Shown in pieces: positions 5,888 through 61,945 of a DNA stretch of 64,000 nt. The DNA comes from Ranitomeya imitator (lineage: Eukaryota): contig NC_091288.1 of assembly GCF_032444005.1 (NCBI RefSeq), positions 223,820,001 through 223,884,000 of the forward strand. The letters are read 5' to 3'. The stretch's first letter is position 1, and each line of letters begins with the position of its first letter. The translations under genes were made by a program, and so were the position numbers. The notes beneath the pieces are model-generated. The model ran no database searches, was not told where the DNA came from, and saw only the letters and a program-made list of their open reading frames with translations.

Positions 5888-6902
5888 CTTCTTTTAGGAG
5901 ACTCTTTCCTACATAGCATGACACAACAGTTTTCATATAGATGACGCTATTGGCTTTGGCTCTGGACAAGTGATTTATAAATAAAATCCTCTCAGTTTCC
6001 TTAGGGACACGTTATACACTGCAGTGATTGGACAGTGGTTGTGTGGCAGGAGACACAGAGATGGTACAGATGTCCTGACAGGAAACCTCCACATAAGACG
6101 CCTCGGATCTCCTCTCGTTATCTGAAAGACAATTAAATGGAAGATGGTGGGAAGGAAGTAAAGCTTTCACCATCTGTGAGGACTTATTGAGGTGACTGGG
6201 TGATCCCACATCTCCAATACACGGGGCAGAATTAAGAACCACCATGGACAAGATACAATGGAGACTCACATTAGAGTGATATGGAGCAGCACTTGGGTAG
6301 AAAGTTCATACATTAATTTGTTAAAAAAGAGAATGGACAGCGCCTCCAAAAATCATACATTGATCTAATGCCGCTAGGCAAAAATATATATAACTGACCA
6401 TGAGGTTCTTAGGAGAGCACTCTGATCAGACTGTTTGAAGCCCACTGCCACATCTCGGCGAACCTCTCAGTAGGTCCCTATAGCCTTAAAGGAGCAGCAT
6501 GTGCGCTAACCACCGTCGCAGCGGCAATGCACCGGCAGGGTGGATGGCCTGATGCTTCACACCACCCGTGCTGGAAGAGTGAGTCCCCATGACTCCAGAC
6601 CACACCACCCCACCCCACCAGCGCAAAGCCACAGCAACAATGGCTGCCAGACATTAATTTATCAGAGTTTCGAATATCACATGCGCATCTCTGAAGCCCA
6701 TGTTATATCACACATATCGTACAGAGTATACATAGAAATTAATGGATGGAAAATAAATGTAATGTTTGTGATTGCACTAGTAATGGGGTGACAAAAAATC
6801 TTCCCACATATCCATATAACGCCCATTATACACATTCATGTAATGAACTTGTACCCCACTTTATCCGATGGCTGGTCACTATGTTAGTCTGGATGTTGTA
6901 CT

Positions 6903-22818: not shown

Positions 22819-23874
22819 CTTCTTGTAGGAGATGGACTCTTTTTACCAACACATAAGTCAACAGTTTAAATCTGCCGCACCCTATTGGGTTTAGCACCAG
22901 GTATTGGTTGTATAGCACCAGATAAGGTCTATATTCTGCAGTGATTGGACAGTGGTTGTGTGGCAGGAGATTAAGAGATTGTACAGATGTCGGGACAGGA
23001 AACCTCCAGAAGAGACGCCTCAGATCTCCTAACCTGTCGTTACCTGCAAGACAATTAAATGGAAGATGGTGGGAGAAGGAAGTGAACTGTTTCACCATCT
23101 GTGATGACATTTTGGGATGCTGGGACATTTCGGGAACAGAAAATCTCTCTTTACTTCTGTTTAGTTGCTATGAACAAGGTACAATGGAGACTCAGAAGAA
23201 AGAGAAGGAAGCAACACTCAGTGTAAATGGTCCATGATGTGACCCACCACACCAGCTCTCCCCAAATGTCAATGTGATGTGTGTTTGGTCTACGTGGTCA
23301 TATGTACGTGCGTGCTCCCTACTTTATCCATCTGCGGATCCCTATGTTAGTCCGGGGTCCTGCGTATCTAATCTAAAGGTTGTCACATGCTAATCTTTCC
23401 TCATAATGGACGTCGTGCCATGTTCAGTGCAGCACAGGGTAATGGTTGGAGAGTGGTTGTTGGGAGTTTGTGCCTGCAGATAAGCTTGTGTAATTTCATG
23501 GACGTGTCCCTTAGAAGCTCGGATCTTTAAGCTTGGTCAATGGGAACTTAAAGACGTCCTCGATATTCACGCGGAGCTGCCATGAAGTGGCATGTTGTGA
23601 TGAATTTGGAGAAATCCTTTGCTGTATTAGTTGTGTTCAGCTGTTCAGTGTTTTTGTTACTTTACTGTAAAGAGCAGAAAGTTTTGTACATTTTGCTAAT
23701 AATCTGAATTTACAATGGGAGTAGGTGAATAGCTTTGTCTGCCCCTGTATTCCAGGTCTCCATGTCTGGTGCTGCCTCGTGCTCCTTTGTGATCACTTCT
23801 GTATTTCACTAGCAGCTGCTTAATCTTTGTGATGTCTTCAATCTCTTCATTAACCTTATGTGAGCAGGTGACAA

Positions 23875-41646: not shown

Positions 41647-42784
41647 AGGCCATGTTCACACAGTGCGTTTTTTACCGCGGAACCGCGGCGGTTTTGCCGC
41701 TGCGGTTCCGCAGCTGTTTTCCATGCAGGGTACAGTACACTGTACCCTATGGAAAACAGGACACACTGTGCACATGGTCCGGAAATTGTAAAAAAAAAGA
41801 CGCGCTGAATAGCTCCCGGAAAAAAGAAGGAGCATGTCAATTCTTTTTCCGGAGCCGCAGCGGTTCTGCACCCATAGACCTCCATTGTGAGGTCCAAACC
41901 GCAGTAAAACCCGCAGATCAAAAATATATCTGCGGGTTTTACTGCGGTTTGATGTGCAGAACCGCTGCAGCAGGAAGTGCGGGGAGCGGGCGGAAGTGCG
42001 TGGGCGGAGTGTGGCTGCCCCCCCCGTGTTCCGATCCCGCCCCCCGTGCTCCGATGCCCCCCCCCAGTGCTCCGATGCCCCCCCCCCCAGTGCTCTGATG
42101 CCCCCCCCGTGCCCTAATCTCCCCCCCTTATACTCACCCGGCGTCCCGGTGTCCGTCCGGCCGTCTTCTCCCTGGGCGCCGCCATCTTGCAAAATGGCGG
42201 GCGCATGCGCAGTGCGCCCGCCGAATCTGCCGGCCGGCAGATTCGTTCCAAAGTGCATTTTGATCACTGAGATATAACCTATCTCAGTGATCAAAATAAA
42301 AAAATAGTAAATGACACCCCCCCCCCTTTGTCACCCCCATAGGTAGGGACAATAAAAAAAATAAAGAATTTTTTATTTTTTTTTTNNNNNNNNNNNNNNN
42401 NNNNNNNNNNNNNNNNNNNNNNNNNNNNNNNNNNNNNNNNNNNNNNNNNNNNNNNNNNNNNNNNNNNNNNNNNNNNNNNNNNNNNNNNNNNNNNNNNNNN
42501 NNNNNNNNNNNNNNNNNNNNNNNNNNNNNNNNNNNNNNNNNNNNNNNNNNNNNNNNNNNNNNNNNNNNNNNNNNNNNNNNNNNNNNNNAACCCTAAAAAA
42601 ATTCCTAGAAAACACACAGACTCTGGCTAGAAAACTGCATAAAAAAACGCATCAAAAAACGCATCAAAAACGGACCAAAAAAGGACCAAAAAAAGGACCT
42701 GCGTTTTCTGCCAAGAGCTGCAGTTTTTTAAAAAACAGTCAGGAAAAAAAAAGGATGGAAATCCTGAACGTGTGAACATACCCT
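41647..42784. mobile_element. Harbinger-type MITE spanning the assembly gap
   Basis: aggccatgttcacac ... gtgtgaacataccct termini next to TAA-like sites; host Tc1 sequence continues on both sides. Confidence 0.65.
42386..42588. other. Assembly gap (N run)
   Basis: 203 N bases. Confidence 1.
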
Positions 42785-44970: not shown

Positions 44971-45045
44971 TCACAATGTCACGCTCAGGACGATAATCAG
45001 CACAACGAGTAACAAGAGGATGACACCCCCGATAATCCAGAGCAC
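44971..45045 (-). CDS. TIR-like gene, last coding exon (C-terminal transmembrane anchor)
   Basis: Acceptor tttgtctcttag|; encodes VLWIIGGVILLLLVVLIIVLSVTL followed by TGA. Confidence 0.8.
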   Translation of the reverse strand: MLWIIGGVILLLLVVLIIVLSVTL

Positions 45046-45728
45046 CTAAGAGACAAACACAATTACTGACACATTGTATCAGCCGTATGACAGCGCTCCA
45101 CCATCCTGACCCTGCGATCAGATCTTCTCATCATGGCTTGTTCTCTAAGATTACATTCACGATGAATGTTCCCTCATTTTCCACTTTGTCCCTGTTCACA
45201 TTGTCTGTTCGCTATTGAACACTGGAGTGGGATTAAATCTAGAGGAAACATTCCATTCTCTGAGGTTCCAGACGTGGATCCATAGGAGGAAAATCTCAGT
45301 TCTTGCTCCCAAAATAAAGTCTTAGATTGACGGGAGCAGATTATATTAGTAAGCCATTGTTTGGGCAAGAAATCTCTATGAAGTCACCCCCAGTCGGGAG
45401 ATGACCTCCATATTATACAAGGTGAAGAGTCCCAGAGTAATGTCTGTGGGGTACCAGACGACTACAAGCCCCGATAATGACAAAAGAGAAGCTGCAGTGT
45501 ACAGCAAGAAGGCCAAGGTCCTGTACTTATCTGAGTGCTTAGTGCAAGATGTGGCCAGTGCTCCGGATAGTCAGCAATTACCTTGTCCTTTCTCCAGCTT
45601 TTTTGGCCCTTTTAATATAAAGAAATAATCAAAGTCAGACATGAGGTAGAAGAGTTCACCACATCTCCAGTCATTAATGGTCCATATCTGGCAGACCCCC
45701 CATTGTACCGGTCTGACGCATTATATCA

Positions 45729-45729
<1 letters not shown>

Positions 45730-45789
<60 letters not shown>
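45730..45789. repeat. (TA)n microsatellite, about 30 units
   Basis: Seen directly. Confidence 0.99.
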
Positions 45790-45792
<3 letters not shown>

Positions 45793-45889
45793 ATAACTGT
45801 AATGGGTTTATTGTGAAAGAGAGGAGCCAGAAGACGGGGCATATGATTTCCACTTCTCCTGCGCTGACTGGAAGCACTTCACATTTATA

Positions 45890-46455
45890 TTAAATGGTGC
45901 AGGTTTATTTTAGCAGTGCAGGGGTTAATCTGCTCAGGTGAGCTCCGGGAAGCTTTCCTGCATTAAGGCTCCCAGCTGTTCACTGTTAGCTCCTCCCATC
46001 TCCTATATTACCTTGGCCCTGGCTAACACTCATTGTCAGAGAAGCTTATGCTGCATGGCTGGAGGTTGGTGGTGGTTGTTATTGGAGAAGGCGTTTGATG
46101 GATTTATCTGTGACTGTTGCTAGGTTTTGAGTGTGTGATAATTCCCTTTCTTCTCCTACTTTAGTTAAACCCCATCCTCCACTCCCTGATGCATTCCTCT
46201 GTTATATGTGTGAGTATATTTGTATGCTTGGTTTATTTCGTTACCCCTGTCCTTATTATCTTGTTAGTCAGGTTGATGTACTACAGTACACTACTACTCC
46301 CCTCTTCCCTGGGTGGGGGAAAGGTACAGACTGAGGGCGGATGCAGGAGCTCTGACACGGTACGTGGCCCTGGCATCTTCACCATCAGAAGTAATTCGGG
46401 GAGCAGGGCGAGCTAGGGTGCCCCTAGCATTAGAGACAGGGAAGGAGCCCCGACA
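45890..46455. mobile_element. Possible truncated LTR fragment
   Basis: Composition and ending (..gagctagggtgcccctagcattagagacagggaaggagccc) are LTR-like, but no clear TG..CA termini or TSD were found. Confidence 0.35.
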
Positions 46456-46988
46456 ACGAAGTTATGACTAATAACTAAGCTATGCTGTGACAGATGTCAC
46501 TAGTGCCATCTGACCTTTAATATGGTCAATTAGGTTCCTTCTCGTTTTTTTTTTAATTTTTGTTTTTTTTCCATCAAACCTCCTGATGACCCTACAAAGT
46601 CTAGAGAAAATAAGATTGCTGTCACTCCACCCTGTGAATCTTATTCAGCCCATTATTTGGGAGCTGTCAAGTTCCCCTTCCTATACCTAAAACTATGACT
46701 GGTCTGGAGGAGATAATACAATCCTGTCCACTCTTCCCTCATCATGGAAACTCAGATTTGAAGAACTAAATGGACAGATTGTAGAAGGATCCCATCATGA
46801 CCCCCTAAGGGCCATTAGACCACCCTCTATTCTACATGACATGACCACATTTCTGGTTGGTGTAAAATTTACCTTTTCGTTATTGTCGTTGTGCTGGGAA
46901 ATCTATAATAGAAAAAGATAAATCAATGTATGGAGATGTAGAGTGCTGCCCTGTGTAGAAGGCCCATCGCCCGTCAGGCCTAACTCAC

Positions 46989-47039
46989 CGGTAAGCTGTC
47001 GGACGCGTTTCTGCCGTTGTTGTCACTGATGAGGTTTCT
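46989..47039 (-). CDS. TIR-like gene exon (51 nt, phase 0-0)
   Basis: ttttttatag|...|gtgagt; RNLISDNNGRNASDSLP. Confidence 0.8.
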
Positions 47040-47859
47040 CTATAAAAAATAGGAAAGAACTAATTTTCAGCCACCGGAGGAATAGTAAAGATAGAGCCCC
47101 TCATGGTGCTGGATGAGCCGGGGATCTGTTCTCCCACCCAATCCCAACTCATGAACTTCAGGATGAATACAATGTGCAGACGAGAAGGATTTGTGGCCGA
47201 CTGTCACTGCGAATTTCACCCATTGTCCGGGCAGTGACATAACATGAAGTCTCGGATAGGACACTAACTATCATGGGTCTGCAGTAGTAGTGGTCTTGTC
47301 ATATGGGCCACAGGAACCTCCAAGCTCCAGGACCAGCTGCATCCCCGCTGCACCCATGATACTAGCGCTCCTGAGTCCGGGGCAGGAGAAACATACAGGG
47401 ACGGATATAATAATCCTGTACAAGAAACAGGCATGGTGCCGCAATTTGTTCTTGTATATTAAGCCACACCTTCTCTCCCCTTAAGCCACACCCTCTTCCA
47501 CAAAGCCACACCTTTTCTCATGAAGACACACTCCCAATCACAAAGTATTTCTTACAGTGCCACACCCTCTTCCACAAAGCCACACCCTCTTTTTCAAAAT
47601 ACCACACCCCATTCACAAGATCCACGCCCTTTCACATGGTGCCACACCCACTTGTAAAAAGCCACACCCTATTTCCAAATAAGGGGTTAACAGTATTATA
47701 AGCACATATATAGGCCTATAAAAAGTGGTGTCAATTTGCATCAAAAGGTTTGAACATTTGTTGCATTTTCCTCCAAAGTTGAGGCGTAAACAATAGCAAA
47801 TTCTGAGTACGATATGGCGGCATTATTATCACTGCTATCAGAAACCCGGAGACTCGCAC

Positions 47860-47879
47860 CTCTTCATCGTTCCTCAGAT
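47860..47879 (-). CDS. TIR-like gene microexon (20 nt, phase 1-0)
   Basis: ttacatttcag|atctgaggaacgatgaagag|gtgcga; (D)LRNDEE. This exon supplies the phase change needed to reach the TM frame. Confidence 0.7.
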
Positions 47880-48080
47880 CTGAAATGTAAGATAAAGTCA
47901 TCAGAATTCTAAGAACTGTTATTACCACTATTATTACTACTACTCCTATTATCTTCTGTTATTATTTCCTCCGGTCACACGATGATAAAACCCGTGGGCA
48001 GGACATGAACCGCATGCATTAATGTCCGGTGGTGACCGATAGGGGCTGGGAGGTTGGAGGGTGCAATTAGCCCAGGGTGA

Positions 48081-48290
48081 TGTGAGAGGAGAGAAGAGGA
48101 GAGAAAAGGAGAGAAGAAGAGAGAAGAGGAGGTAGAGAAAAAAAGAAAGGAGAGAGGAGAGAAGAGGAGAGAAAAGGAGAGAAGAAGAGAGAAGAGGAGG
48201 TAGAGAAAAAAAGAAAGGAGAGAGGAGAGAAGAGGAGAGAAAAGAAGAGGAAAGGAGAGAAGAGAAGTAGAGAAGTAGAGAAGAGAAGGG
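48081..48290. repeat. Polypurine (GAGAA-rich) tract
   Basis: Almost exclusively A/G on the plus strand, with an internal duplication. Confidence 0.9.
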
Positions 48291-48409
48291 TGATGGGTGG
48301 ACGCCGCCCCGGGGACCCCAGGTACAGTGTCCTGCTGCCATAACCCCATGTCCATGGCCCTGGGGGCAGATAATGATACAGGACCCCTGGGGGGCTCTTC
48401 ACTCCTCAC

Positions 48410-48448
48410 CTGAGCCGGGTCGCTGGGACGATCGGACGCTGGTGTCAT
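48410..48448 (-). CDS. TIR-like gene exon (39 nt, phase 1-1)
   Basis: tctcttgtctccatcag|...ggctcag|gtgagg; (D)DTSVRSSQRPGS. Confidence 0.75.
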
Positions 48449-48709
48449 CTGATGGAGACAAGAGAGATCATAAGTTACAATGATAACAGTTCAGAGCAAT
48501 GACAATGACGTAACCACCCGAGCATCACAATGAGCTCCGCACACCGCAGAGACATCGCCAGGAATAATCAGGACTTATGTAGGTGTCTTGTAGCACATGG
48601 ACAACTTTTGGGGCATTTTTGTTCTGATTGCTTGTTCTTTTGTCTGTAAAGCATTTCTGGAATAGGGTATTCTTAACAAGTTTGCACAGTTTGTCTTTTT
48701 CAACCTCTG

Positions 48710-50530
48710 TGTATCACTGTACATAGCAGGCTGCAGAATGAGTTACCAGGGATCAGTCAGGCAGCTCGTCTGTAACACTTATCTCCCTTCTCCTGGACCA
48801 TCTTCTACATCCTCTTTATATCACTGTACATAGCAGGCTGCAGAATGAGTGACCAGGAATCAGTCAGTCAGCTTGTTCTGTCTGTAACACTTATCTCCCT
48901 TCTCCTGGACCATCTTCTACATCCTCTATATATCACTGTACATAGCAGGCTGCAGAATGAGTGACCAGGGATCAGTCAGTCAGCTCGTTCTGTCTGTAAC
49001 ACTTATCTCCCTTCTCCTGGACCATCTTCTACATCCTCTATATATCACTGTACATAGCAGGCTGCAGAATGAGTGACCAGGAATCAGTCAGTCAGCTTGT
49101 TCTGTCTGTAATACTTATCTCCCTTTTCCTGGACCATCTGCTACATCCTCTATATATCACTGTACATAGCAGGCTGCAGAATGAGTGACCAGGTATCAGT
49201 CAGTCAGCTTGTTCTGTCTGTAACGCTTATCTCCCTTCTCCAGGAACATCTTCTAAATCCTCTGTATATCACCGTACATAGCAGGCTGCAGAATGAGTGA
49301 CCAGGGATCAGTCAGTCAGCTCGTTCTGTCTGTAACGCTTATCTCCCTTCTCCTGGACTATCTTTTACATCCTCTATATATCATTGTACATAGCAGCCTG
49401 CAGAATGAGTGACCAGGGATCAGTCAGTCAGCTTGTTCTGTCTGTAATGCTTATCTCCCTTCTCCTGGAACATCTTCTACATCCTCTCTATATCTCTGTA
49501 CATAGCAGACTGCAGAATGAGGGACCAGGGATCAGTCAGTCAGCTCGTTCTGTCTGTAGCGCTTATCTCCCTTCTCCTGGACTATCTTCTACATCCTCTA
49601 TAGATCACTGTACATAGCAGGCTGCAGAATGAGTGACCAGGGATCAGTCAGTCAGCTCGCTCTGTCTGTAACGCTTATCTCCCTTCTCCTGGACCATCTT
49701 CTACATCCTCTGTGTATCACTGTACATAGCAGGCTGCAGAATGAGTGACCAGGGATCAGTCAGTCAGCTTGTTCTGTCTGTAACACTTATCTCCCTTCTC
49801 CTGGACCATCTTCTACATCCTCTATATATCTCTGTACATAGCAGGCTGCAGAATGAGTGGCCAGGGATCAGTCAGTCAGCTCGTTCAGTCTGTAACAATT
49901 ATTTCCCTTCTCCTGGACCATCTTCTACATCCTCTATATATCATTGTACATAGCAGGCTGCAGAATGAGTGACCAGGGATCAGTCAGTCAGCTCGTTCAG
50001 TCTGTAACACTTATCTCCCTTCTCCTGGACCATCTTCTACATCCTCTATATATCACTGTACATAGCAGGCTGCAGAATGAGTGACCAGGGATCAGTCAGT
50101 CAGCTCGTTCAGTCTGTAACACTTATCTCCCATCTCCTGGAACATCTTCTACATCCTCTATATATCACTGTACATAGCAGGCTGCAGAATGAGTGGCCAG
50201 GGATCAGTCAGTCAGCTTGTTCTGTCTGTAACACTTATCTCCCTTCTCCTGGACCATCTTCTACATCCTCTATATATCACTGTACATAGCAGGCTGCAGA
50301 ATGAGTGACCAGGGATCAGTCAGTCAGCTCGTTCAGTCTGTAACACTTATCTCCCATCTCCTGGAACATCTTCTACATCCTCTGTATATCACTGTACATA
50401 GCAGACTGCAGAACGAGTGACCAGGGATCAGTCAGCTTGTTCTGTCTGTAACGCTTATCTCCCTTCTCCTGGACCATCTTCTACATCCTCTATATATCAC
50501 TGTACATAGCAGGCTGCAGAATGAGTGACC
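48710..50530. repeat. 112-bp tandem repeat, about 16 copies (intronic)
   Basis: Unit tatatcactgtacatagcaggctgcagaatgagtgaccagggatcagtcag...; homologous ORFs at 49741 and 50077 lie 336 bp (3 x 112) apart. Confidence 0.97.
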
Positions 50531-50784
50531 ATTATGCAGATGACTACACAGCCCAAGTCATACAGAGAAAAATAAAGTCCTTCATAACTAGAAGATAATC
50601 TGGAGCGATCATTTACGAAATGGCGGAAATCACAGATGAATTTAAATACTTTTCCCCACATTTCTATTACTCAGATTCACACAATCCCCTAAAGCTGCTT
50701 CGTCTTCCTGCCGCACAGAGGACAAAGCTTCCTCCTCAGGTAAAACTATCTCAGAAAAAGAAATCTCAAGGGGAATAAAATTCA

Positions 50785-51277
50785 AGGGGTTTTTCCCACA
50801 AAGTTAGTTTTATTCAATAGATCTTGTAATAATAATAATTTTCACAATTAAATGTGATAAATAAAATCTTCCTGTGCTGAGATAATCTTATAACTGTGCC
50901 CCTGATGTTCTGTGTAATGGTCGTGTCCGAGTATACAGGAACATGGTCTGATCGTACCACTGCTCCTGGGCGGGGGAGGACACAAAAGAGAATATACAGA
51001 CATTACATATAAGCAACATTTTATCTCAAAGAAAGAATCATCTGTGATCCCGGCTGTAATGTCTGTATACTCTCTTTTGTCCCCCCTGCCCAGGAGCAGT
51101 GGTACGATCAGACCATGTTCCTGTATACTCGGACACGACCATTACACAGAACATCAGGGGCACAGTTATAAGATTATCTCAGCACAGGAACATTTTATTT
51201 ATCACATCTAATTGTGGAAATTATTGTTATTCCAACATCTATTGATTAAAATGAAATTTGTTCTTGGGACGACCCCT
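50785..51277. mobile_element. T2/Kolobok-like palindromic MITE
   Basis: aggggt...acccct ends beside degenerate TTAA-like sites; arms of about 200 bp are near-perfect reverse complements around a short spacer. Confidence 0.75.
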
Positions 51278-51473
51278 TTAGAAGTCCAGTCCCAGACGGC
51301 CGTCCCTCCTTCTATTATGTCCCATCCAGAGCTGAGCTTCTGTGGTATTTGATAACTTTATCCAATGAGATCTAATCTGGGAGATCCGTTCATGACCAGA
51401 CTTTGGTTGCAGAAATCTCCATTGTTCCCAAAGAAGAGAAAGATCCTTCATTGTGCAGTAAGTATCTTCTGAC

Positions 51474-51518
51474 CTGACCCCTGAATGCAGACGGGAAAGT
51501 TTTCAGAAGATATTGGCC
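51474..51518 (-). CDS. TIR-like gene exon (45 nt, phase 1-1)
   Basis: aatgtcttag|...ggggtcag|gtcaga; (G)PISSENFPVCIQGS. The splice sites are weaker than at the other exons. Confidence 0.55.
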
Positions 51519-51599
51519 CTAAGACATTTGCTCTCCATAGTAATTAGTGAAGATCAGTTGGATTTTGCTCCAAGCAGAGAAGGTAAAGACCACCCCATC

Positions 51600-52354
51600 T
51601 GTTATGTAGGCAATCCAGTGACACAGTGTGCCAGCAATCAGAGCACATACAGTGATCTGACAATAACCCAAAAACAATAGAACGAGCTCTGAGACGTGGA
51701 ATCTCTGTAGACTGCAATACCTGATCTATCCTAAACACAACTAAAGGCAGCTGTGGATTGCGCCTGTCACTACCTATGCAACTCGGCACTGCCTGAGGAA
51801 CTGACTAGCCTGAAGATAGAAAAACAAGCCTGACTTGCCTCAGAGAAATACCCCAAAGGAAAAGGCAGCCCCCCACATATAATGACTGTGAGTAAGATGA
51901 AAAGACAAACGTAGGGATGAAATAGATTCAGCAAAGTGAGGCCCGATATTCTAGACAGAGCGAGGATAGCAAAGAGAACTTTGCAGTCTACAAAAAAACC
52001 CTAAAGCAAAAAAACCACGCAAAGGGGGCAAAAAGACCCACCGTGCCGAACTAACGGCACGGCGGTACACCCTTTGCGTCTCAGAGCTTCCAGCAAAACG
52101 AAATGACAAGCTGGACAGAAAAAGTAGCAACAAAAGCAAAAAGCACTTATCTAAGCAGAGCAGCAGGCCACAGGAAAGATCCAGAAGCTCAGATCCAACA
52201 CTGGAACATTGACAAGGAGCAAGGAAGACAGAATCAGGTGGAGTTAAATAACAAAGCAGCCAACGAGCTCACCAGAACACCTGAGGGAGGAAGCTCAGAA
52301 GCTGCAGTACCACTTGTGACCACAGGAGTGAATTCAGCCACAGAATTCACAACA
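51600..52354 (-). mobile_element. Solo LTR of the same chromovirus group as Gypsy-1 and Gypsy-2
   Basis: Reverse complement starts tgttgtgaattc and ends cataaca; TATTTAA at 52250-52244; duplication cccatc at 51594-51599 and 52355-52360. Confidence 0.92.
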
Positions 52355-54133
52355 CCCATCATTCCCCAGAGTCCAATCCCCCTGCTACACCTGGGCAGTA
52401 AAGGCGCCGCACATGGTAGAGAAGGTAAAGACCACCCCATCATTCCCAAGAGTCCAATCCCCCTACTACACCTGGGCATGGATGCAGTAAAGGCGCTGCA
52501 CATGGTAGAGAAGGTAAAGACCACCCCATCATTCCCCAGAGTCCAATCCCCCCTCCTACACCTGGGCATGGATGCAGTAAAGGCGCTGAACATGGTAGAG
52601 AAGGTAAAGACCACCCCATCATTCCCAAGAGTCCAATCCCCCCTCCTATACCTGGGCAGTTAAGGCGCTGCACATGGTAGAGAAGGTAAAGACCACCCCA
52701 TCATTCCCCAGAGTCCAATCCCCCCTACTACACCTGGGCATGGATGCAGTAAAGGCGCTGAACATGGTAGAGAAGGTAAAGACCACCCCATCATTCCCAA
52801 GAGTCCAATCCCCCCTCCTACACCTGGGCAGTAAAGGCGCTGCACATGGTAGAGAAGGTAAAGACCACCCCATCATTCCCCAGAGTCCAATCCCCCCTAC
52901 TACACCTGGGCATGGATGCAGTAAAGGCGCTGAACATGGTAGAGAAGGTAAAGACCACCCCATCATTCCCAAGAGTCCAATCCCCCTTCCTACACCTGGG
53001 CAGTAAAGGCGCTGCACATGGTAGAGAAGGTAAAGACCACCCCATCATTCCCCAGAGTCCAATCCCCCCTACTACACCTGGGCATGGATGCAGTAAAGGC
53101 GCTGAACATGGTAGAGAAGGTAAAGACCACCCCATCATTCCCAAGAGTCCAATCCCCCCTCCTACACCTGGGCAGTAAAGGCGCTGCACATGGTAGAGAA
53201 GGTAAAGACCACCGTGCGTCTGATCCATCATTCCCCAGAGTCCAATCCCCCCTCCTACACCTGGGCAGTAAAGGCGCTGCACATGGTAGAGAAGGTAAAG
53301 ACCACCGTGCGTCTGATCCATCATTCCCCAGAGTCCAATCCCCCCTCCTACACCTGGGCAGTAAAGGCGCTGCACATGGTAGAGAAGGTAAAGACCACCG
53401 TGCCTCTGATCCATCATTCCCAGGAGTCTAATACCCCTCCTACACCTGGGCAGTAAAGGCGCTGCACATGGTAGAGAAGGTATAGACCACCGTGCGTCTG
53501 ATCCATCATTCCCCAGAGTCCAATCCCCCCTCCTACACCTGGGCAGTAAAGGCGCTGCACATGGTAGAGAAGGTAAAGACCACCGTGCCTCTGATCCATC
53601 ATTCCCAGGAGTCTAATACCCCTCCTACACCTGGGCAGTAAAGGCGCTGCACATGTTAGAGAAGGTAAAGACCACCGTGCGTCTGATCCATCATTCCCCA
53701 GAGTCCAATCCCCCCTCCTACACCTGGGCAGTAAAGGCGCTGCACATGGTAGAGAAGGTAAAGACCACCGTGCGTCTGATCCATCATTCCCAGGAGTCCA
53801 ATACCCCTCCTACACCTGGGCAGTAAAGGCGCTGCACATGGTAGAGAAGGTAAAGACCACCGTGCGTCTGATCCATCATTCCCCAGAGTCCAATCCCCCC
53901 TCCTACACCTGGGCAGTAAAGGCGCTGCACATGGTAGAGAAGGTAAAGACCACCGTGCGTCTAATCCATCATTCCCCAGAGTCCAATCCCCCCTACTACA
54001 TCTGAGCAGTAAAGGCGCTGCACATGGTAGAGAAGGTAAAGACCACCGTGCATCTGATCCATCATTCCCCAGAGTCCAATCCCTCCTCCTACACCTGGGC
54101 ATGGATGCAGTAAAGGCGCTGCACATGGTAGAG
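52355..54133. repeat. Composite tandem array: alternating 82/90-bp units (172-bp dimer), then 93-bp units
   Basis: ORF starts at 52674, 52846 and 53018 are 172 bp apart; later taaagg at 53176 and 53269 are 93 bp apart. Confidence 0.95.
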
Positions 54134-54691
54134 TGGATCTACACAGGAAACATTTCATCTGTCCCAACAATCCATCTCCGCGGTGTTTACAATGTGTCAT
54201 AAACTCTTAGCATCCAGGTTAATGATTGAACAGAAGCTCCGAGAAGACACAAGGATCCTGGGGTGAGGTTTGGCTGCCCTGACCACAAATCTGCAGCATA
54301 CGCTGGTGCCTACTTCTTATGACCACCAATCCTAGAAACACCCTCCCAGCGGAGTGACGGCCATAGAAGTATAAGGGAAACGCTCAATCTTTAAGGAGAC
54401 ATGAGCCAACCTCAAATACTGACCATACGTTACCGATTAGAGGAGCAGCACGGATGGGGTTTGTGAACACAACGTTTCTTTATGGAAAGTAGCAGCACAG
54501 AAGCTCCCCATAAAATGTGCACAATGCACACAAAGTCAAGACGTCATGTGCCCATGGTCAGTCTTATAAATTAGGACAGATATGGGGCTTTCCCTCTACA
54601 GAAGGTGTCGATAAGGTCCACTCCGCACCCTGCAACCACAGCCGCCTTCCCCAGCGCTTCTGTCTATTTACCGTCCCCTGTTGCCCTGGGT

Positions 54692-54758
54692 GGGATTAGA
54701 ACTCAGGACACCAGTGCTGCAAGGCTGCTGTGCTAACCACTGCGCCACCGTGCTGCCC
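54692..54758 (-). mobile_element. tRNA-derived SINE head
   Basis: Reverse complement gggcagcacggTGGCGCAGTGGttagcacagcagccttgcagcactggtgtcctGAGTTCTAATCCc, with Pol III A-box and B-box. Confidence 0.7.
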
Positions 54759-54789
54759 ATTCTTTTACTGGTTATATATAGTATTATTG

Positions 54790-55560
54790 GTTCGCATGCT
54801 CTATGAATATCATTCTTATGCCGAGATTCTATCACCTTACCATGGATACTACTTGATTTGATGTCGTATGATTCTCTGGACCTGGTTCTGTACTTAATAT
54901 GTGTTGTTGGTCTCCGGAAATATGGCCGCTGATGGAACGCATGCGCACTGTAATCTACCTGACACTGTGCGTTCTCTGGTTAGCGTCAATTAAACAGGCG
55001 GCGTGCGTGGTTATTGGTGCCATTGAGTGTTATGTAACCCACATGCGCGCTGTGTGATGACGCTGATGGAGTGCACCTTTTCATGTGTAGGGTGTCACGG
55101 GCGCATGCGCCAACTATATTGCTCTATAACTAGTGCGGCAATGACAGGACTTTGTTATCAATTCCCCTTTGAGAAAGCGATTACGCGAAACGTGCGTCGG
55201 GGCCGTGGGAAGATCTCTCTGTAGTCCGGACTAATTATGGGTGAGCATGTACTTTGCCTTATTAATATGTGATGTTACTGGGTGCCTCATATAAGGTAAT
55301 ACTATAGGATAATACTGTGCAATATACATTTAGCACCTGGATATGATTAGTTACATCTAAACACTTCAATTTGCTCACCCTGGTCATACAGTGGACTTGT
55401 GTCCTATCCTCAGTGTAACGCTTGTTTTCTCAAAGTACATTATCGATTTATGGGAGAGCCAAATCATTGAATTATGCTCTCGGCCGTTGATATAAGAACG
55501 TGTTTTTTGACTATTGCGTTTGCTTACATTTCTTCCATCGGAGCGGCGAGCACCTTTCTC
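54790..55560 (+). mobile_element. Penelope-like remnant (pLTR region)
   Basis: Contains a hammerhead at 55164-55202 and gcgcatgcgc motifs; boundaries are approximate. Confidence 0.55.
55164..55202 (+). ncRNA. Minimal type I hammerhead ribozyme, U3:A8 core variant
   Basis: ccct TTGAGAA A gcg-atta-cgc GAAA cgtgcg TC gggg: stem I ccct/gggg (one G-U pair), stem II 3 bp, GUC cleavage triplet. Confidence 0.7.
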
Positions 55561-55799
55561 ATGTTACGTTCAGTCTTATGCCACGTTTGGTAACTGCTTA
55601 ATTGTTCATAAACCCTGCAGTGGTGAAAAGAAGGGACCTGCTCGATCCGCTCTCTATACTTAGAGTAAAAGACGCCAGTGGTGGAGCCACAGCGAGAACA
55701 TCGGCTGTATCAACAATGAAGTCACTGCCGCAAAATGACCACAAGTGTTTTCCAGAAGTGGCTTTGTGTAGGAAGCTGTGTGGGAGCGCCATTGTCTGA

Positions 55800-56330
55800 T
55801 GCACGCCGTGTGCACAGAGCCACATTTCCCTCTGATTGGTCCACACCTTCCATAAAGTTTCTGAGCACTAACATCTCCACTGACCTAAAGGAATTACACA
55901 AAAATCATGTTCCACCAGAACTAAACCATAGAGCTCCTTAATCTCAAGCTGGTCCGTCCCTTACATCTTGGCTCTACAGGAAAATCCTCATAAAAAGTAT
56001 AATTTGGCCTAAAATGACTTCGCTCCTACAAGCTCTCCCAAATACTCTACTACAAACTGTCATCTGTTTTTCAGTAAACTCATCTCTGGCTTTTTGTGGG
56101 GCCACAACAATCCTAGACATTGATTGTCACACCCTGAAGGTGAACCTGACCTCACAGCCCCACTACAATCTCAATAAGCAATCCACCTTCGAGGAATATC
56201 AGACTGGATCCAGCGATGTGCTCCAAAACCTGGATCCACATGGAAGGAACCACAGTGATGAGCAAAAGGGTAACAATGTTGTGACCTTCTGCCTCTCAGG
56301 CTCCATATCTCACCATCCACTACTGCTGTG
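55800..56330 (+). mobile_element. Degraded L1 ORF2 (post-RT) fragment
   Basis: IKFLSTNISTDLKELHKNHVPP and FFSKLISGFLWGHNNPR resemble the L1 IKYLG..L...N..P and FF..L...I..F.W...PR motifs. Confidence 0.55.
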
Positions 56331-56982
56331 AACGTGAGACCACCATCATCTTATAGACGATCATCTTTTCTATCTCAGACATAAATTTCACTTGCAACTC
56401 TTTAGCATATGATTAGTTATGCATCGTAGGGTCAAAGGATTTTTTAAAACCTCCTCTATGTCTTGAAGAAATATATAAAGTCCTCACGTGACGTCCTTCA
56501 GTAGGAAACACATTCCAGGAAAATGAACAATTACTGTACGCAGTACACTCCTAAGCTATAGTTTTACTAAGTCCTAGTTCGGTCACGATGCAACTACTGT
56601 CTAATAGCAGAAAGTCTTGTCACCCCACCTCATCCCCTCCATTTACCCCCATTACCTTCTCCCTCTTATCCTTCTCTCCCCTATTCCTTATTATATACAG
56701 CTTGAAACCCTTTAATCTTTATGTGCTAATAGAAGGCAGGAGATCGGTTTTGTTCCATTGTTTATCAACGAAAGAGCAATAGACCAACCACCTGGTAACA
56801 CATTTAGTTTTCTGCCGTTCTGAGCTCCATACTGGATGTAGAACATGGTTCATGATAGTTGAGATGAGTGTTATAATCCGGAGGTCACACACTGACAGTA
56901 ACACATTCTGCAGTCTGCTATGTGCTATGATACATAGAGGATGTAGAAGAAAAAATGGCCATGAAGTGTAATGGAACCTTAC

Positions 56983-56997
56983 CCGAAAAATGAATAT
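56983..56997 (-). CDS. TIR-like gene microexon (15 nt, phase 1-1)
   Basis: cattattttatttag|atattcatttttcgg|gtaagg; (D)IHFS. Confidence 0.6.
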
Positions 56998-57424
56998 CTA
57001 AATAAAATAATGTAATAAGTCGTCATCCCATAAGGTAAAACCATCTGCTCAATGTTGTGAAAGCATCAAATCTACATCTATTTTACTATCAATGGTCACT
57101 TTGGTGTCATGGAGGAGCAATGACTGACTGCAACACTACCCTCACTAATAGAAGGAGATAACGTAAAGGAGGTGGAGACATGGTCAGGAATATTATCAGG
57201 GTGCGATACCTCAATGTCGTGTTCACCCAGAAAAAGTAAAAGGTCATACAGGTGTTTAATAAGCAGGTCACATCAGGAGAGCGGACAGATCATCTCACTT
57301 TTCCATCTTTTTGAGTGGCTCCGATGCACAAACCATTCATGTAGGAAGAGAACATGAGATGGATTGTAAATCTGAAGATCCCTATATCACACCGCACCTT
57401 CTGGTTGTATCATCAGCGCCTTAC

Positions 57425-57472
57425 CGGGAGACCTGAAGCCACTGGTAGAAGTCACCACTGATGGGACTCGTC
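57425..57472 (-). CDS. TIR-like gene exon (48 nt, phase 1-1)
   Basis: ttttctatttcag|...ctcccg|gtaagg; (G)RVPSVVTSTSGFRSP. Confidence 0.8.
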
Positions 57473-57563
57473 CTGAAATAGAAAACACTCGTGAGAAGAG
57501 TCTAGAGGTCGTAGTCAATCTTTGGCAGAATCTCTGCTCCTCATCATGTCTCGTAGGGTTTAC

Positions 57564-57611
57564 CTGTTCTCCTGCCGACATATGAGGACTCAGACGAGGT
57601 TATTCTGATCA
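57564..57611 (-). CDS. TIR-like gene exon (48 nt, phase 1-1)
   Basis: tatttttatag|...gaacag|gtaaac; (V)IRITSSESSYVGRRT. Confidence 0.78.
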
Positions 57612-57852
57612 CTATAAAAATATAAGTCTTCCCCCGGTGCGGCCCACATCAGTGTGCTGATCAGTGATAGAGACCACCGGCCGGAGCGATGCTGACACTG
57701 ACATGTCCATGCTACATATATACGACCCCGTATTATTCATCTCTATGGTCTGACTACCACTGAGAATCACTGTTCAGCTCCCCTCCGCTGTATAAAATGT
57801 GGTCAGTGAGAACATTTGGCCACTTTACCCCTCCTGGCCCCGTGGCTGGTAC

Positions 57853-58125
57853 CTGTGTTTCTGTATGGAGCATTGTTGATGATGTCCTTCAGTTTAAGCA
57901 GCTTGTGATACAAGGAGCTGTAGGCGTCGTGCAACTGGACAGAGATCGGTGATTCGCTAAAGATTGGATCGGGACCCATCAGACTGGCCGATTCCTTCTC
58001 CTGCTCACTGATGAGGATCAGTTCTGTGGCGTAGGAGTCCAGCCGCTGCTCCTCTAATATCCGCCTCCTGTTACTGTCACCGCTGTCCTCCACATCATCC
58101 ACCAGCACAACCACATTACTTGTCC
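57853..58125 (-). CDS. TIR-like gene exon, second half of the alpha/beta domain (273 nt, phase 1-1)
   Basis: tctgtctccgctcag|...acacag|gtacca; (G)TSNVVVLVDDVEDSGDSNRRRILEEQRLDSYATELILISEQEK...YHKLLKLKDIINNAPYRNT. Confidence 0.88.
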
Positions 58126-58180
58126 CTGAGCGGAGACAGAAGATACTGTAATATCTCATCAATATTCAATAGAAAACGCA

Positions 58181-60100
58181 GTGTGCCGCATTCACAAACA
58201 CCAGCCCGGGTGTCAGAACCCCACATATACCGGCCCTGGTGTCAGATACCACAAACACTGGCCCAGAAGTCAGACCCCACAAATACCGACCCTGGTGTCA
58301 GATACCACAAACACTGGCCCAGAAGTCAGACCCCACAAATACCGACCCTGGTGTCAGATACCACAAACACCGACCCTGGTGTCAGATACCACAAACACCG
58401 TCCCGGAAGTCAGACCCCACAAACACCGGCCCGGGTGTCAGAACCCCACATATACCGGCCCTGGTGTCAGATACCACAAATACCGGCCCTGGTGTAAGAT
58501 ACCACAAACACCGTCCCGGAAGTCAGACCCCACAAACACCGGCCCTGGTGTCAGATACCACAAACACCGGCCCGGAAGTCAGACCCCACAAACACCGGCC
58601 CGGGTGTCAGATACCACAAACACCGGCCCGGAAGTCAGACCCCACAAATACCGGCCCTGGTGTCAGATACCACAAACACCGTCCCGGATGTCAGATCCTA
58701 CATACACCGGCCCGGAAGTCAGATACCACAAACACCGTCCCGGATGTCAGATCCTACATACACCGGCCCGCATGTCAGATACCACAAACACCGGCCCGGA
58801 TGTCAGAACCCCACATATACCGGCCCTGGTGTCAGATCCTACATACACCGGCCCGGATGTCAGATCCTACATACACCGGCCTGGATGTCAGATCCTACAT
58901 ACACCGGCCCGGATGTCAGATCCTACATACACCGTCCCGGATGTCAGATCCTACATACACCGGCCCGGATGTCAGAACCCCACATATACTGGCCCGGAAG
59001 TCAGATACCACAAACACCGGCCCGGATGTCAGATACCACAAACACCGTCCCGGATGTCAGATCTTACATACACCGGCCCGGAAGTCAGACCCCACATATA
59101 CTGGCCCGGAAGTCAGATACCACAAACACCGGCCCGCATGTCAGATACCACAAACACCAGCCCGGATGTCAGACCCCACATATACCGGCCCTGGTGTCAG
59201 ATACCACAAACACCGGCCCGGATGTCAGATCCTACATACACCGTCCCGGATGTCAGATACCACAAACACCAGCCCGGATGTCAGAACCCCACATATACTG
59301 GCCCAGAAGTCAGATACCACAAACACCGGCCCGGATGTCAGATACCACAAACACCGTCCCGGATGTCAGATCTTACATACACCGGCCCAGAAGTCAGACC
59401 CCACATATACTGGCCCGGAAGTCAGATACCATAAACACCGGCCCGCATGTCAGATACCACAAACACCAGCCCGGATGTCAGAACCCCACATATACTGGCC
59501 CGGATGTCAGATACCACAAACACCAGCCCGGATGTCAGAACCCCACATATACTGGCCCGGATGTCAGACACCACAAACACCGGCCCGCATGTCAGATACC
59601 ACAAACACCAGCCTGGATGTCAGAACCCCACATATACTGGCCCGGATGTCAGACACCACAAACACCGGCCCGGATGTCAGACACCACAAACACCGGCCCG
59701 GATGTCAGATACCACAAACACCGGCCCGGATGTCAGATACCACAAACACCGGCCCGGATGTCAGATCCCACATACACCAGCCCGGGTGTCAGAACCCCAC
59801 ATATACCGGCCCGGATGTCAGATACCACAAACACCGGCCCGGATGTCAGACCTCACAAACACCGGCCCGGATGTCAGACCTCACAAACACCGACCCGGAT
59901 GTCAGACCTCACAAACACCGGCCCGGATGTCAGACCTCACAAACATCGGCCCGGATGTCAGACCTCACAAACACCGTCCCGGATGTCAGACCCCACAAAC
60001 ACCGACCCAGATGTCAGATCCCACATACACCAGCCCGGAAGTCAGACCCCACAAATACCGACCCTGGTGTCAGATACCACAAACACCGTTCCGGATGTCA
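58181..60100. repeat. 28-bp minisatellite, about 68 copies (intronic)
   Basis: Unit ccggcccggatgtcagataccacaaaca; period 28 (59701 and 59729). Confidence 0.97.
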
Positions 60101-60419
60101 TAAATCCCTGTGTGGAAGATTCAATTACTATGATTTTTGTAGTCATTATCTGAGCATAGCTTTATCTGTGCTATTCCTATTGATATATTCTGTTATTGGC
60201 TCATTACATATTACGTTATCTTATTCAGAAGGACCTCCTGGTCACTAATCTTCTGTCCTCACACTGTGACTGTGGATGACAGTTGCATCTGTGGTTGTCT
60301 TCGTGCTACACAGCTCTGCCGTGCTCTGACCAAGGTGGGGAACAGTGGGCCCAGTTACCACAGAAGCCATCTCTTTCATGGAGATCAGTTATGTGTTATA
60401 TGAACTTTTGTCTCCTTAC

Positions 60420-60702
60420 CAAAGTGATCTGACAGATCCTTCAGCTCCTCATCATACAGAGAATCGGTCACATTTGCAATATTTAGGCGCCCTCTCTTCT
60501 TGGTGTGGTACAAAATGGCAAAAGAGTTCTGAGACAGGCCGAAGATGAAGTTTTCACCACTGTTGGAAATATATATAGGATTGACCTTCCCCACCAAGCT
60601 CTGAAACATTGCGTAGAAGGAGAGCAGGTTAAACAGCCACTTGTAATTGGCATCTCCATCTCTGGAGAAGATCCCGACCTTGTGATTTTGATTTTTAGTC
60701 AT
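60420..60702 (-). CDS. TIR-like gene, first coding exon (283 coding nt; exon starts at 60721)
   Basis: tttctccccag| at 60721, ATG at 60702, donor TTTG|gtaagg; MTKNQNHKVGIFSRDGDANYKWLFNLL...FAILYHTKKRGRLNIANVTDSLYDEELKDLSDHF. The phase-1 end joins the next exon in frame. Confidence 0.88.
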
Positions 60703-61391
60703 TATATTTGCAGTACCGTTCCTGGGGAGAAATCATAGGAAACATTTCATGTTACTGGTGTGTTGGAATCATGGAGGAGCTAATATCAGTATAACGTGAC
60801 CATCCTCAGTTCATGTTAGTCCCATATTTCCTCTCTATGGCTGATGTGAATCTATCTGCAGGTATTACGGCATGTTCAAAATGAAACCAGCCTAAAGTTC
60901 ACGGAGGTCCTAGGTCCCCCTTGTGATTTGGGTGGGTGAACACCTATACTAGACGGCGTGTCCTGAACTGATGTTGGAGCACCATTTTCATATTTACTAT
61001 GGAGGTTCTCCACTCTACAATCCCTGAATTCAGCCGGACATAGTCATGACTTATACAAGATCACAAAAAACATGTGCTAGACGGTGACTGCAACACCAGA
61101 TACTGTATAACCACAGACAAGGGAGGCGATATTAGATATGGCAGCCAGCCAGAGATGGGGCATCAATAAAACAGAACACAGATCTGGAATCATTGCTGAC
61201 AATTGTATAAAGTGAAATCGGCATCTCTTCCAGTTATCGTCTCTAGATTAACGACGGAACTTCTCATAGAAAACTGCATGAAATAGTTTATACCAAGGGG
61301 TATTCTCAGGGTAATGATGCTTGAATTTCATCGCTGTTATCCATGTGTCATTACCCTGAAAAACCTCCTATGATGAAACATCTTCTACGTG

Positions 61392-61436: not shown

Positions 61437-61945
61437 CACACTCTACAGACCCTTACTCTACAGACCCCCACTCTACAGAGGAGATCTTCACTCTACAGAG
61501 GAGATCCCCACTCAACAGAAGAGACCCTCACTCAACAGAGGAGATCCTCACTCAACAGTAGAGACCCTCACTCAACAGAGGAGATCCTCACTCTACAATG
61601 GAGAACCTCACTCAACAGAGGAGATCCTCACTCAACAGAGGAGATCCTCACTCTACAGTGGAGAACCTCACTCAACAGAGGAGATCCCCACTCAACAGAG
61701 AAGACCCTCACTTAACAGAGGAGATTCTCACTCTACATTGGAGACCCTCACTCAACAGAGGAGATCCTCACTGTACATTGGAGACCCTCACTCAACAGAG
61801 GAGATCCCCACTCAACAGAGAAGACCTTCACTTAACAGAGGAGATTCTCACTCTACAGTGGAGATCCTCACTCAACAGAGGAGATCCCCACTCAACAGAG
61901 AAGACCCTCACTCTGCAGATGAGACCCTCACTCTAGAGAGGAGAA
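61437..61945. repeat. 20-bp minisatellite (ctcaacagaggagatcctca), about 25 copies
   Basis: Seen directly. Confidence 0.93.

Follow-up and report, generated by a model that had tools for sequence, protein, structure and literature searches.

Among the closest described counterparts of the gene reported here are the bacterial CAP12 (TIR-STING) and Pycsar effector TIRs of PF10137. In SfSTING, a CAP12 protein, the phosphodiester and ribose of nicotinamide adenine dinucleotide (NAD+) are coordinated by R78, N80 and S10; E84 is catalytic, and D110 of a neighboring TIR completes the site (Morehouse et al. 2022, PMC9402430). The Dictyostelium protein TirC, a TIR of CAP12 type that one hydrophobic helix holds in place, is an active, potent NADase that this tether restrains and that is toxic on release (PMC13142454). 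How does a frog gene with a TIR-like N-terminal domain compare with these enzymes? We analyzed a 64,000-nucleotide stretch of Ranitomeya imitator DNA (contig NC_091288.1, positions 223,820,001 to 223,884,000 of the forward strand; here called the window, whose numbering is used throughout), which carries such a gene on its minus strand. The gene is expressed, has nine coding exons and encodes a tail-anchored protein; on balance, we consider it probable that the N-terminal domain of this protein is a divergent TIR-type domain, which may bind and cleave NAD+ or a related nucleotide.

The predicted protein has 281 residues: the domain (1-140), a Ser/Asp/Asn-rich linker encoded by small exons (141-258), and a hydrophobic helix formed by the final 23 residues, which is a tail anchor. 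Orthologues in many frogs have the identical layout and ending. With CAP12 proteins such as SfSTING and with PycTIR, the frog domain has in common an R-x-N that aligns with theirs and a glutamate in helix alpha-C, and these TIRs give its best profile match over strands A to D. It differs from them in falling below the Pfam threshold and in having eight extra residues between R-x-N and the glutamate; moreover, the frog protein is eukaryotic, intron-bearing and tail-anchored, and has no STING or cyclic-nucleotide sensor domain. Human SARM1 (NADase glutamate E642) is likewise an animal TIR with an alpha-C glutamate, and the loop from strand C to that glutamate is similarly long (sequence printed in Table S4 of the preprint described below). 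However, SARM1 is regulated and assembled into octamers through ARM and SAM domains, whereas the frog protein has only the linker and the tail anchor. TirC could, by analogy, serve as a working model for a membrane-held frog TIR, although its helix is N-terminal and TirC, acquired recently from bacteria, is a direct match to PF10137, while the frog family is far more diverged. In its overall plan, the frog protein resembles MAVS-type adaptors, which also begin with a cytosolic signaling domain, continue with a disordered linker and end in a tail anchor; MAVS carries a CARD, and the frog protein has a TIR-like domain instead.

Members of the same family are already listed in a preprint. Hurieva et al. 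(bioRxiv, 22 April 2026, doi 10.64898/2026.04.20.719644) gathered eukaryotic TIRs from InterPro and Foldseek and took a glutamate as catalytic when its C-alpha lay ≤3 Å from E85 of ThsB after TM-align. Their Table S2 holds one Xenopus cluster of TIRs, made up of A0A1L8EZ87 (Glu85, 2.09 Å), A0A803JPW1 (Glu83, 2.02 Å) and A0A8J1LQJ2 (Glu182, 2.3 Å). The main text of the preprint mentions neither Xenopus nor frogs nor amphibians, and the family appears in the supplementary tables only. Neither Xenopus nor these proteins are named in the supplement of the TIR atlas (PMC13142454). The Xenopus cluster belongs to the same family as the window product. Its member A0A803JPW1 (P0174 in our set), from Xenopus tropicalis, has 43% identity with the window product over residues 1-190 and has the GIFSR, ILYHTKxRGRxN and SLYDEEL motifs in common with it; its predicted catalytic Glu83 is aligned to Glu86. 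Coming from a different frog, it is either an orthologue or a paralogue, and the protein that was assayed has 174 residues and ends without a hydrophobic tail. A TIR fold with this glutamate is already public at table level, hence not new, and this narrows what is added here to a complete, RNA-supported gene model including the tail anchor, the extent of the family and its clustering in the genome, the correspondence of R-x-N and the specificity controls.

Conservation of Glu86 and the R-x-N motif in a frog family

The full domain of about 140 residues is encoded by exon 1 and the first 50 residues of exon 2. Searching the same genome with exon 1 gave 22 matches at 35 to 57% identity, indicating at least 22 tandem paralogues, every one within C7:221.32-224.02 Mb (2.7 Mb) and every one with the same phase-1 donor after "LG". 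About half of these paralogous domain exons on C7 lack an ATG and are preceded by an acceptor site, and they are therefore internal exons in those copies. A profile built from 19 copies and run against 1.84 billion proteins retrieved 378 clusters at 50% identity (357 with E ≤1e-10). All 44 of the 44 named hits were "uncharacterized proteins" of anurans, a range that takes in Ascaphus, Bombina, Xenopus, ranids and dendrobatids. Many family members have 2 to 6 copies of the domain, and database relatives have up to six. Together with the ATG-less exons, these point to multi-domain genes or to gene models fused across tandem copies. We infer that the tandem expansion, the fast-diverging linkers and the multi-copy architectures fit a family engaged in an immune arms race.

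Across 222 domain instances, the best-kept positions (window numbering) were S13, R14, W22, L23, C59, Y65, H66, G71, R72, N74, Y83, D84, E86, L87, D104, D105, Q121 and K138; the window copy has Asn at the position of the consensus C59. Most of the near-invariant residues among them (S13, R14, W22, Y65, H66, G71, R72, N74, Y83, D84, E86, D104, D105 and Q121) are found where strands end on their C-terminal side or directly beyond, which is the ligand-binding place in such folds. Glu86 itself was kept in 210 of the 222 instances (95%) and in all 19 of the 19 paralogous exons of the same genome.

The initial annotation had proposed from the letters alone that the domain follows the alternating order of a TIR, with Glu86 at the NADase catalytic position. 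All nine sequence elements that it quoted are present in the translated minus strand, and its placement of Glu86 is supported: the residue is in the alpha-C helix of the predicted model, it aligns with the PF10137 glutamate by hhalign, and its Xenopus counterpart Glu83 lies 2.02 Å from ThsB E85. The codon for this candidate catalytic glutamate, the third residue of helix 3 (the alpha-C equivalent), is at 60445-60447 on the minus strand, and its assignment draws on conservation, hhalign, AlphaFold2 and Tables S2 and S4 of Hurieva et al. In the hhalign alignment, Glu86 falls on the invariant glutamate ("FELG") of 14 bacterial PF10137 TIRs, and R72 and N74 of the family's G-R-x-N fall on their invariant R-x-N. 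Measured against the CAP12/Pycsar motif R-x-N-V-x-x-E-x-G, the frog domain has R72, N74 and E86 present, conserved and aligned, and the Gly after the glutamate is missing. An eight-residue, frog-specific insertion (N77-D84 in the window) lies between R-x-N and the glutamate. Reading from the sequence alignments, we infer that E86 may be the alpha-C catalytic glutamate and that R72 and N74 may be the counterparts of the NAD-contacting R-x-N of SfSTING.

R72 and N74 belong to the stretch KKRGRLN (K68-N74; codons at 60481-60501, minus strand), which had been described as an atypical basic insert that could bind nucleotide or nucleic acid. The nucleotide-binding half of that description agrees with the alignment of R72 and N74 to the R-x-N of PF10137 TIRs, which contacts NAD in SfSTING (hhalign; PMC9402430). 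The other half fails: the stretch is not atypical, because G71, R72 and N74 are kept in 217, 194 and 204 of the 222 domains, respectively, and it is part of the most conserved block of the family, ILYH[TS]KxRGRxNxTxVTDSLYDxEL. Taken with the alignments, this conservation suggests that the KKRGRLN loop most likely contains nucleotide-contact residues.

How specific is the profile match to CAP12/Pycsar TIRs? We compared the family with alignments of nine TLR TIRs from this genome, the 14 bacterial PF10137 TIRs, 25 bacterial TIR_2 domains, 13 receivers and 20 MMR_HSR1 GTPases. Against PF10137, hhalign gave a score of 33.6 (probability 63%, P 7e-5) over 90 columns covering strands 1 to 4. Reversed profiles scored 11, 40 column shuffles scored ≤17.9 and 40 block shuffles scored ≤20.8. 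The PF10137 score was thus above all 82 shuffled or reversed controls and above both families of other folds. For scale, TLR and CAP12 TIRs, two undoubted TIR families, score 30.5 against each other, with a probability of 42%. Because the controls were lower and this reference comparison reached only 30.5, the CAP12/Pycsar-type link appears modest but specific, and it is the only specific profile link that we found.

Predicted fold and structural neighbors

AlphaFold2, run with family alignments, gave models with a predicted local distance difference test (pLDDT) score of 93.6 for the Ascaphus orthologue and of 92.5 for window residues 1-150 (predicted template modeling score, 0.87). In the model of the window product, strand 7-13, helix 17-29, strand 37-44, helix 50-58 and strand 61-67 are followed by a loop of 16 residues (68-83); then come helix 84-94, strand 99-106, helix 111-120 and strand 129-134, with a short helix last. 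Every element that the initial annotation had proposed is where it was placed. Both models show a strict five-fold beta/alpha alternation, as in the TIR superfamily (Pfam clan STIR). The predicted fold of the window product, a beta/alpha sandwich with five strands that all run parallel, is compatible with a TIR. Helix 84-94 follows strand 3 and so corresponds to alpha-C; Glu86, its third residue, lies in its first turn.

Structure searches gave a mixed picture. Among predicted structures in Swiss-Prot, Cap12 TIR-STING and PycTIR led the annotated neighbors (ranks 1, 2, 5, 18 and 27). Foldseek against the PDB returned weak, generic matches with TM of about 0.5, namely flavodoxin, TIR-STING 9lmq (rank 3), FprA, receivers, GTPases and MilB/BcmB. 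In the ESM Atlas, the family itself was followed by PF10137, DUF4062 and TIR_2 clusters, mixed with receivers and ParA-like proteins; with ESM Atlas features, exon 1 alone was uninformative and residues 1-145 retrieved their own family only. AlphaFold DB clusters included non-frog relatives at 21 to 27% identity with TM 0.71 to 0.79, and a 132-residue frog fragment in that database is auto-annotated "TIR domain-containing protein." A homodimer prediction scored 0.02, which is evidence neither for nor against self-association. A search of PDB-sequence profiles had as its only match the caspase-3 p12 subunit (E 0.078; FSR..W..L and LY segments, profile positions 7-84), which we took as chance because caspases appeared in no structure search.

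Enzyme, scaffold or another fold

We regard it as quite likely that the domain is a true member of the TIR superfamily. The gene (44971-60702, minus strand) encodes a 281-residue tail-anchored protein, and in the mechanism that we propose its N-terminal 140 residues face the cytosol. The domain would bind NAD+ or a related nucleotide through a pocket formed by E86 with R72 and N74, and the N-glycosidic bond would be cleaved once copies are brought together on the membrane. The outcome would be an innate-immune output, in which an ADP-ribose (ADPR)-type signal is made or NAD+ is depleted. That the protein is an active NAD+-cleaving enzyme is less likely than not, and we hold this part of the proposal only tentatively. 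A bolder version, which we think unlikely to hold in full, is that these are frog-specific, massively expanded tail-anchored TIR enzymes whose NAD pocket comes from, or is closest to, bacterial CAP12/Pycsar TIRs rather than those of TLR/IL-1R. Clustering on an organelle membrane would then produce a nucleotide signal or NAD+ depletion, so that the proteins would form a platform like that of MAVS but carry their own enzyme, and the preprint assay would have missed the activity since the isolated domain was un-oligomerized or its product fell outside the three cyclic ADPR (cADPR) isomers.

Several results weigh against an NAD-handling TIR. Neither exon gave a Pfam TIR hit at E up to 10, no Pfam family passed the threshold in either exon, in 10 full-length relatives or in 54 family domains, and only 2 of these 54 domains touched PF10137, with E 0.026, below the cut-off. 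The family thus stays below the membership thresholds of the curated Pfam TIR profiles (PF01582, PF13676 and PF10137). PF01582 was found at 21 loci in this genome, all of TLR type and none in the C7 cluster. In the profile comparisons, the family's scores against TIR_2 (16.5, with the glutamates still aligned) and TLR TIRs (14.6) were not significant. The distance from N74 to E86 is 12 residues, compared with 4 in CAP12-type TIRs. As a caveat from structure, searches of solved structures showed no preference for TIR over GTPase, deoxyribosyltransferase or receiver folds. Finally, the sole experimental datum on the family is negative: A0A803JPW1 was candidate 27 of the 154 expressed in Escherichia coli (1 h), and its entries in Table S4 are blank for Active, any cADPR isomer, NAD+ depletion and ThsE activation (doi 10.64898/2026.04.20.719644). 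This negative is weak evidence, because, of the 61 animal TIRs with the glutamate in that assay, only 12 were active and 49 were negative (doi 10.64898/2026.04.20.719644).

The same blank entries, with no detectable product or NAD+ loss from one member in E. coli, also suit the explanation that survives best beside ours, which we judge fairly unlikely: a TIR-like domain without catalysis that acts as a homotypic membrane scaffold or adaptor, with the conserved glutamate and loop serving in packing or partner binding. Most TIRs of TLR, IL-1R and MyD88 are thought to be non-catalytic scaffolds or adaptors. The tail-anchored layout agrees with such a role, as do the tandem domain copies of many members, which are as expected for assembly platforms (some may be fused models). 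However, the near-invariant polar residues S13, R14, H66, R72, N74, D84, E86, D104, D105 and Q121 form a dense set that bears a closer resemblance to a ligand-binding or active site than to an interface, and the assay says little here, given how many Glu-bearing animal TIRs were negative in it.

A nucleotide N-glycosidase or transferase of the TIR, deoxyribosyltransferase or MilB kind, in which the same glutamate acts on something other than NAD+, such as a nucleoside monophosphate or modified nucleotide, seems improbable to us. The position of the glutamate is common to MilB-like enzymes, but the sole significant profile link, in comparisons covering TIR, receiver and GTPase profiles, is to the NAD-cleaving CAP12/Pycsar TIRs, and it takes in the NAD-contacting R-x-N.

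Least probable of all is that the domain is unrelated to TIRs, being a degenerate GTPase-like or an independent flavodoxin-like domain with a convergent resemblance: GTPases are the top solved-structure matches by Z (CysN, 9.4; SelB, 8.9; IRGQ, 8.5 to 8.8), a remote structural relative is auto-named an AIG1-type G-domain protein, and the VVIDDL strand of a few members draws weak Walker-B hits, but no member has a P-loop, the model is all-parallel without the antiparallel strand 2 of GTPases, and hhalign gave 14.8 over 18 columns for MMR_HSR1 GTPases and 16.1 over 6 columns for receivers, against the far longer and higher-scoring PF10137 match. The P-loop pattern sought after strand 1 was GxxxxGK[ST], and the family consensus there is FSRSxExxYxWL. 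As to a receiver fold, strand 3 of the family ends in Y-H-T and not in the phospho-accepting Asp. An NTPase reading based on the Walker-B-like Pfam hits (KAP_NTPase, AAA_16 and NB-ARC, all on VVIDDL alone) was rejected because the domain is without a P-loop. The initial annotation had also named SEFIR as an alternative, and this was not borne out in the Pfam searches: PF08357, which is in Pfam-A, was absent for both exons (E up to 10), for the 10 relatives and from the families listed for the 54 domains, with no profile-profile test made for it.

What would an NAD-binding or NAD-cleaving frog TIR mean? Catalytic TIR domains are increasingly coming to light in animal immunity, and chytrid and ranavirus disease take a heavy toll on amphibians. 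A family with dozens of tandem copies in each frog genome, a tail anchor and an apparently complete NAD-pocket signature is a plausible fast-evolving amphibian immune module. If active, the protein would be a TIR enzyme tethered to a membrane in a vertebrate and also a rare visible sequence link from animal TIRs to bacterial CAP12/Pycsar effector TIRs; if inactive, it would be one more TIR-like scaffold.

Gene model, transcripts and repeats

Translation of the minus strand gave two coding blocks, exon 1 (60420-60702) and exon 2 (57853-58125), which together span exactly the interval of the initial annotation. The open reading frame of the first runs from an ATG at 60702 to a GT donor at 60419-60418, and the second is flanked by the acceptor AG (58127-58126) on one side and the donor GT (57852-57851) on the other. 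The 281-residue database protein P0165, an NCBI/UniRef "uncharacterized protein [Ranitomeya imitator]," is 100% identical to the window and maps exactly to the genome as nine coding exons on the minus strand, from 60702 down to the stop codon at 44971-44973; exons 1 and 2 encode its residues 1-186.

Exon 1 encodes residues 1-94 and the first base of codon 95, covering strands 1 to 3, helices 1 and 2, the conserved loop and the beginning of helix 3. Its limits are set by the open reading frame, the splice sites, the full match to P0165 and a loose end of RNA-derived contigs that equals the 3' end of the exon. Exon 2 encodes residues 95-186, with strand 4 and its invariant D104-D105, helix 4, strand 5 and the start of the linker. 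Exon 3 (57425-57472; residues 186-201) continues the linker and is backed by spliced contigs in four runs as well as by protein mapping. Exact mapping of P0165 places five small exons of the low-complexity Ser/Asp/Asn-rich linker within 45579-48448, at about 48410-48448, 47860-47880, 46989-47039, 46873-46902 and 45579-45608 (limits within ~2 nucleotides). The last coding exon, also placed by protein mapping (44971-45042), holds the hydrophobic helix that ends the protein and the stop codon. All of these exons are on the minus strand.

RNA-derived contigs from four public runs (at least three studies) were confined to exons 2 and 3 and skipped 57473-57852, with GT..AG on the minus strand. Past 58126, the same contigs continue into the reverse complement of the final 30 bases of exon 1; past 57425, they continue into exon 4 sequence with one base different, so that the exon 3-exon 4 junction shows up as a loose end of the RNA contigs. 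The exon 1-exon 2 junction was likewise taken from loose ends of the contigs, owing to the 1.9-kb minisatellite in intron 1. Because the exon junctions are present in RNA contigs, the gene is transcribed and spliced as modeled. The differing base is at 48442 in exon 4, where all four runs have G and the minus strand of the window has C, changing Thr203 to Ser in the linker; with the change present in the contigs of all four runs, it is therefore an allele or strain difference.

Intron 1 (58126-60419, phase 1, minus strand) is 2.3 kb long and consists mainly of a 28-bp minisatellite at 58193-60100 (~68 copies, 83% matches). Plus-strand open reading frames of up to 669 codons in this intron are repeat artifacts and not genes, because the minisatellite creates them. 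The long intron between exons 3 and 4 holds two tandem arrays, at 48704-50531 and 52355-54101, one with a 112-bp unit (16 copies, 93% matches) and the other with a 93/185-bp unit (~10 copies, 94 to 97% matches). Just upstream of the first coding exon, a 20-bp tandem repeat of ~24 copies occupies 61469-61944, and a site resembling an acceptor at 60722 hints that an untranslated 5' exon lies farther upstream. Downstream of the gene, a run of N at approximately 42373-42600 marks an assembly gap or masked sequence. The C-terminal part of the Ranitomeya variabilis isoform P0168 is unlike that of other orthologues and matches the minus strand of the window at 22895-23299 (43%) and 6014-6112 (79%); it is probably a repeat- or transposon-derived piece misjoined in the gene model.

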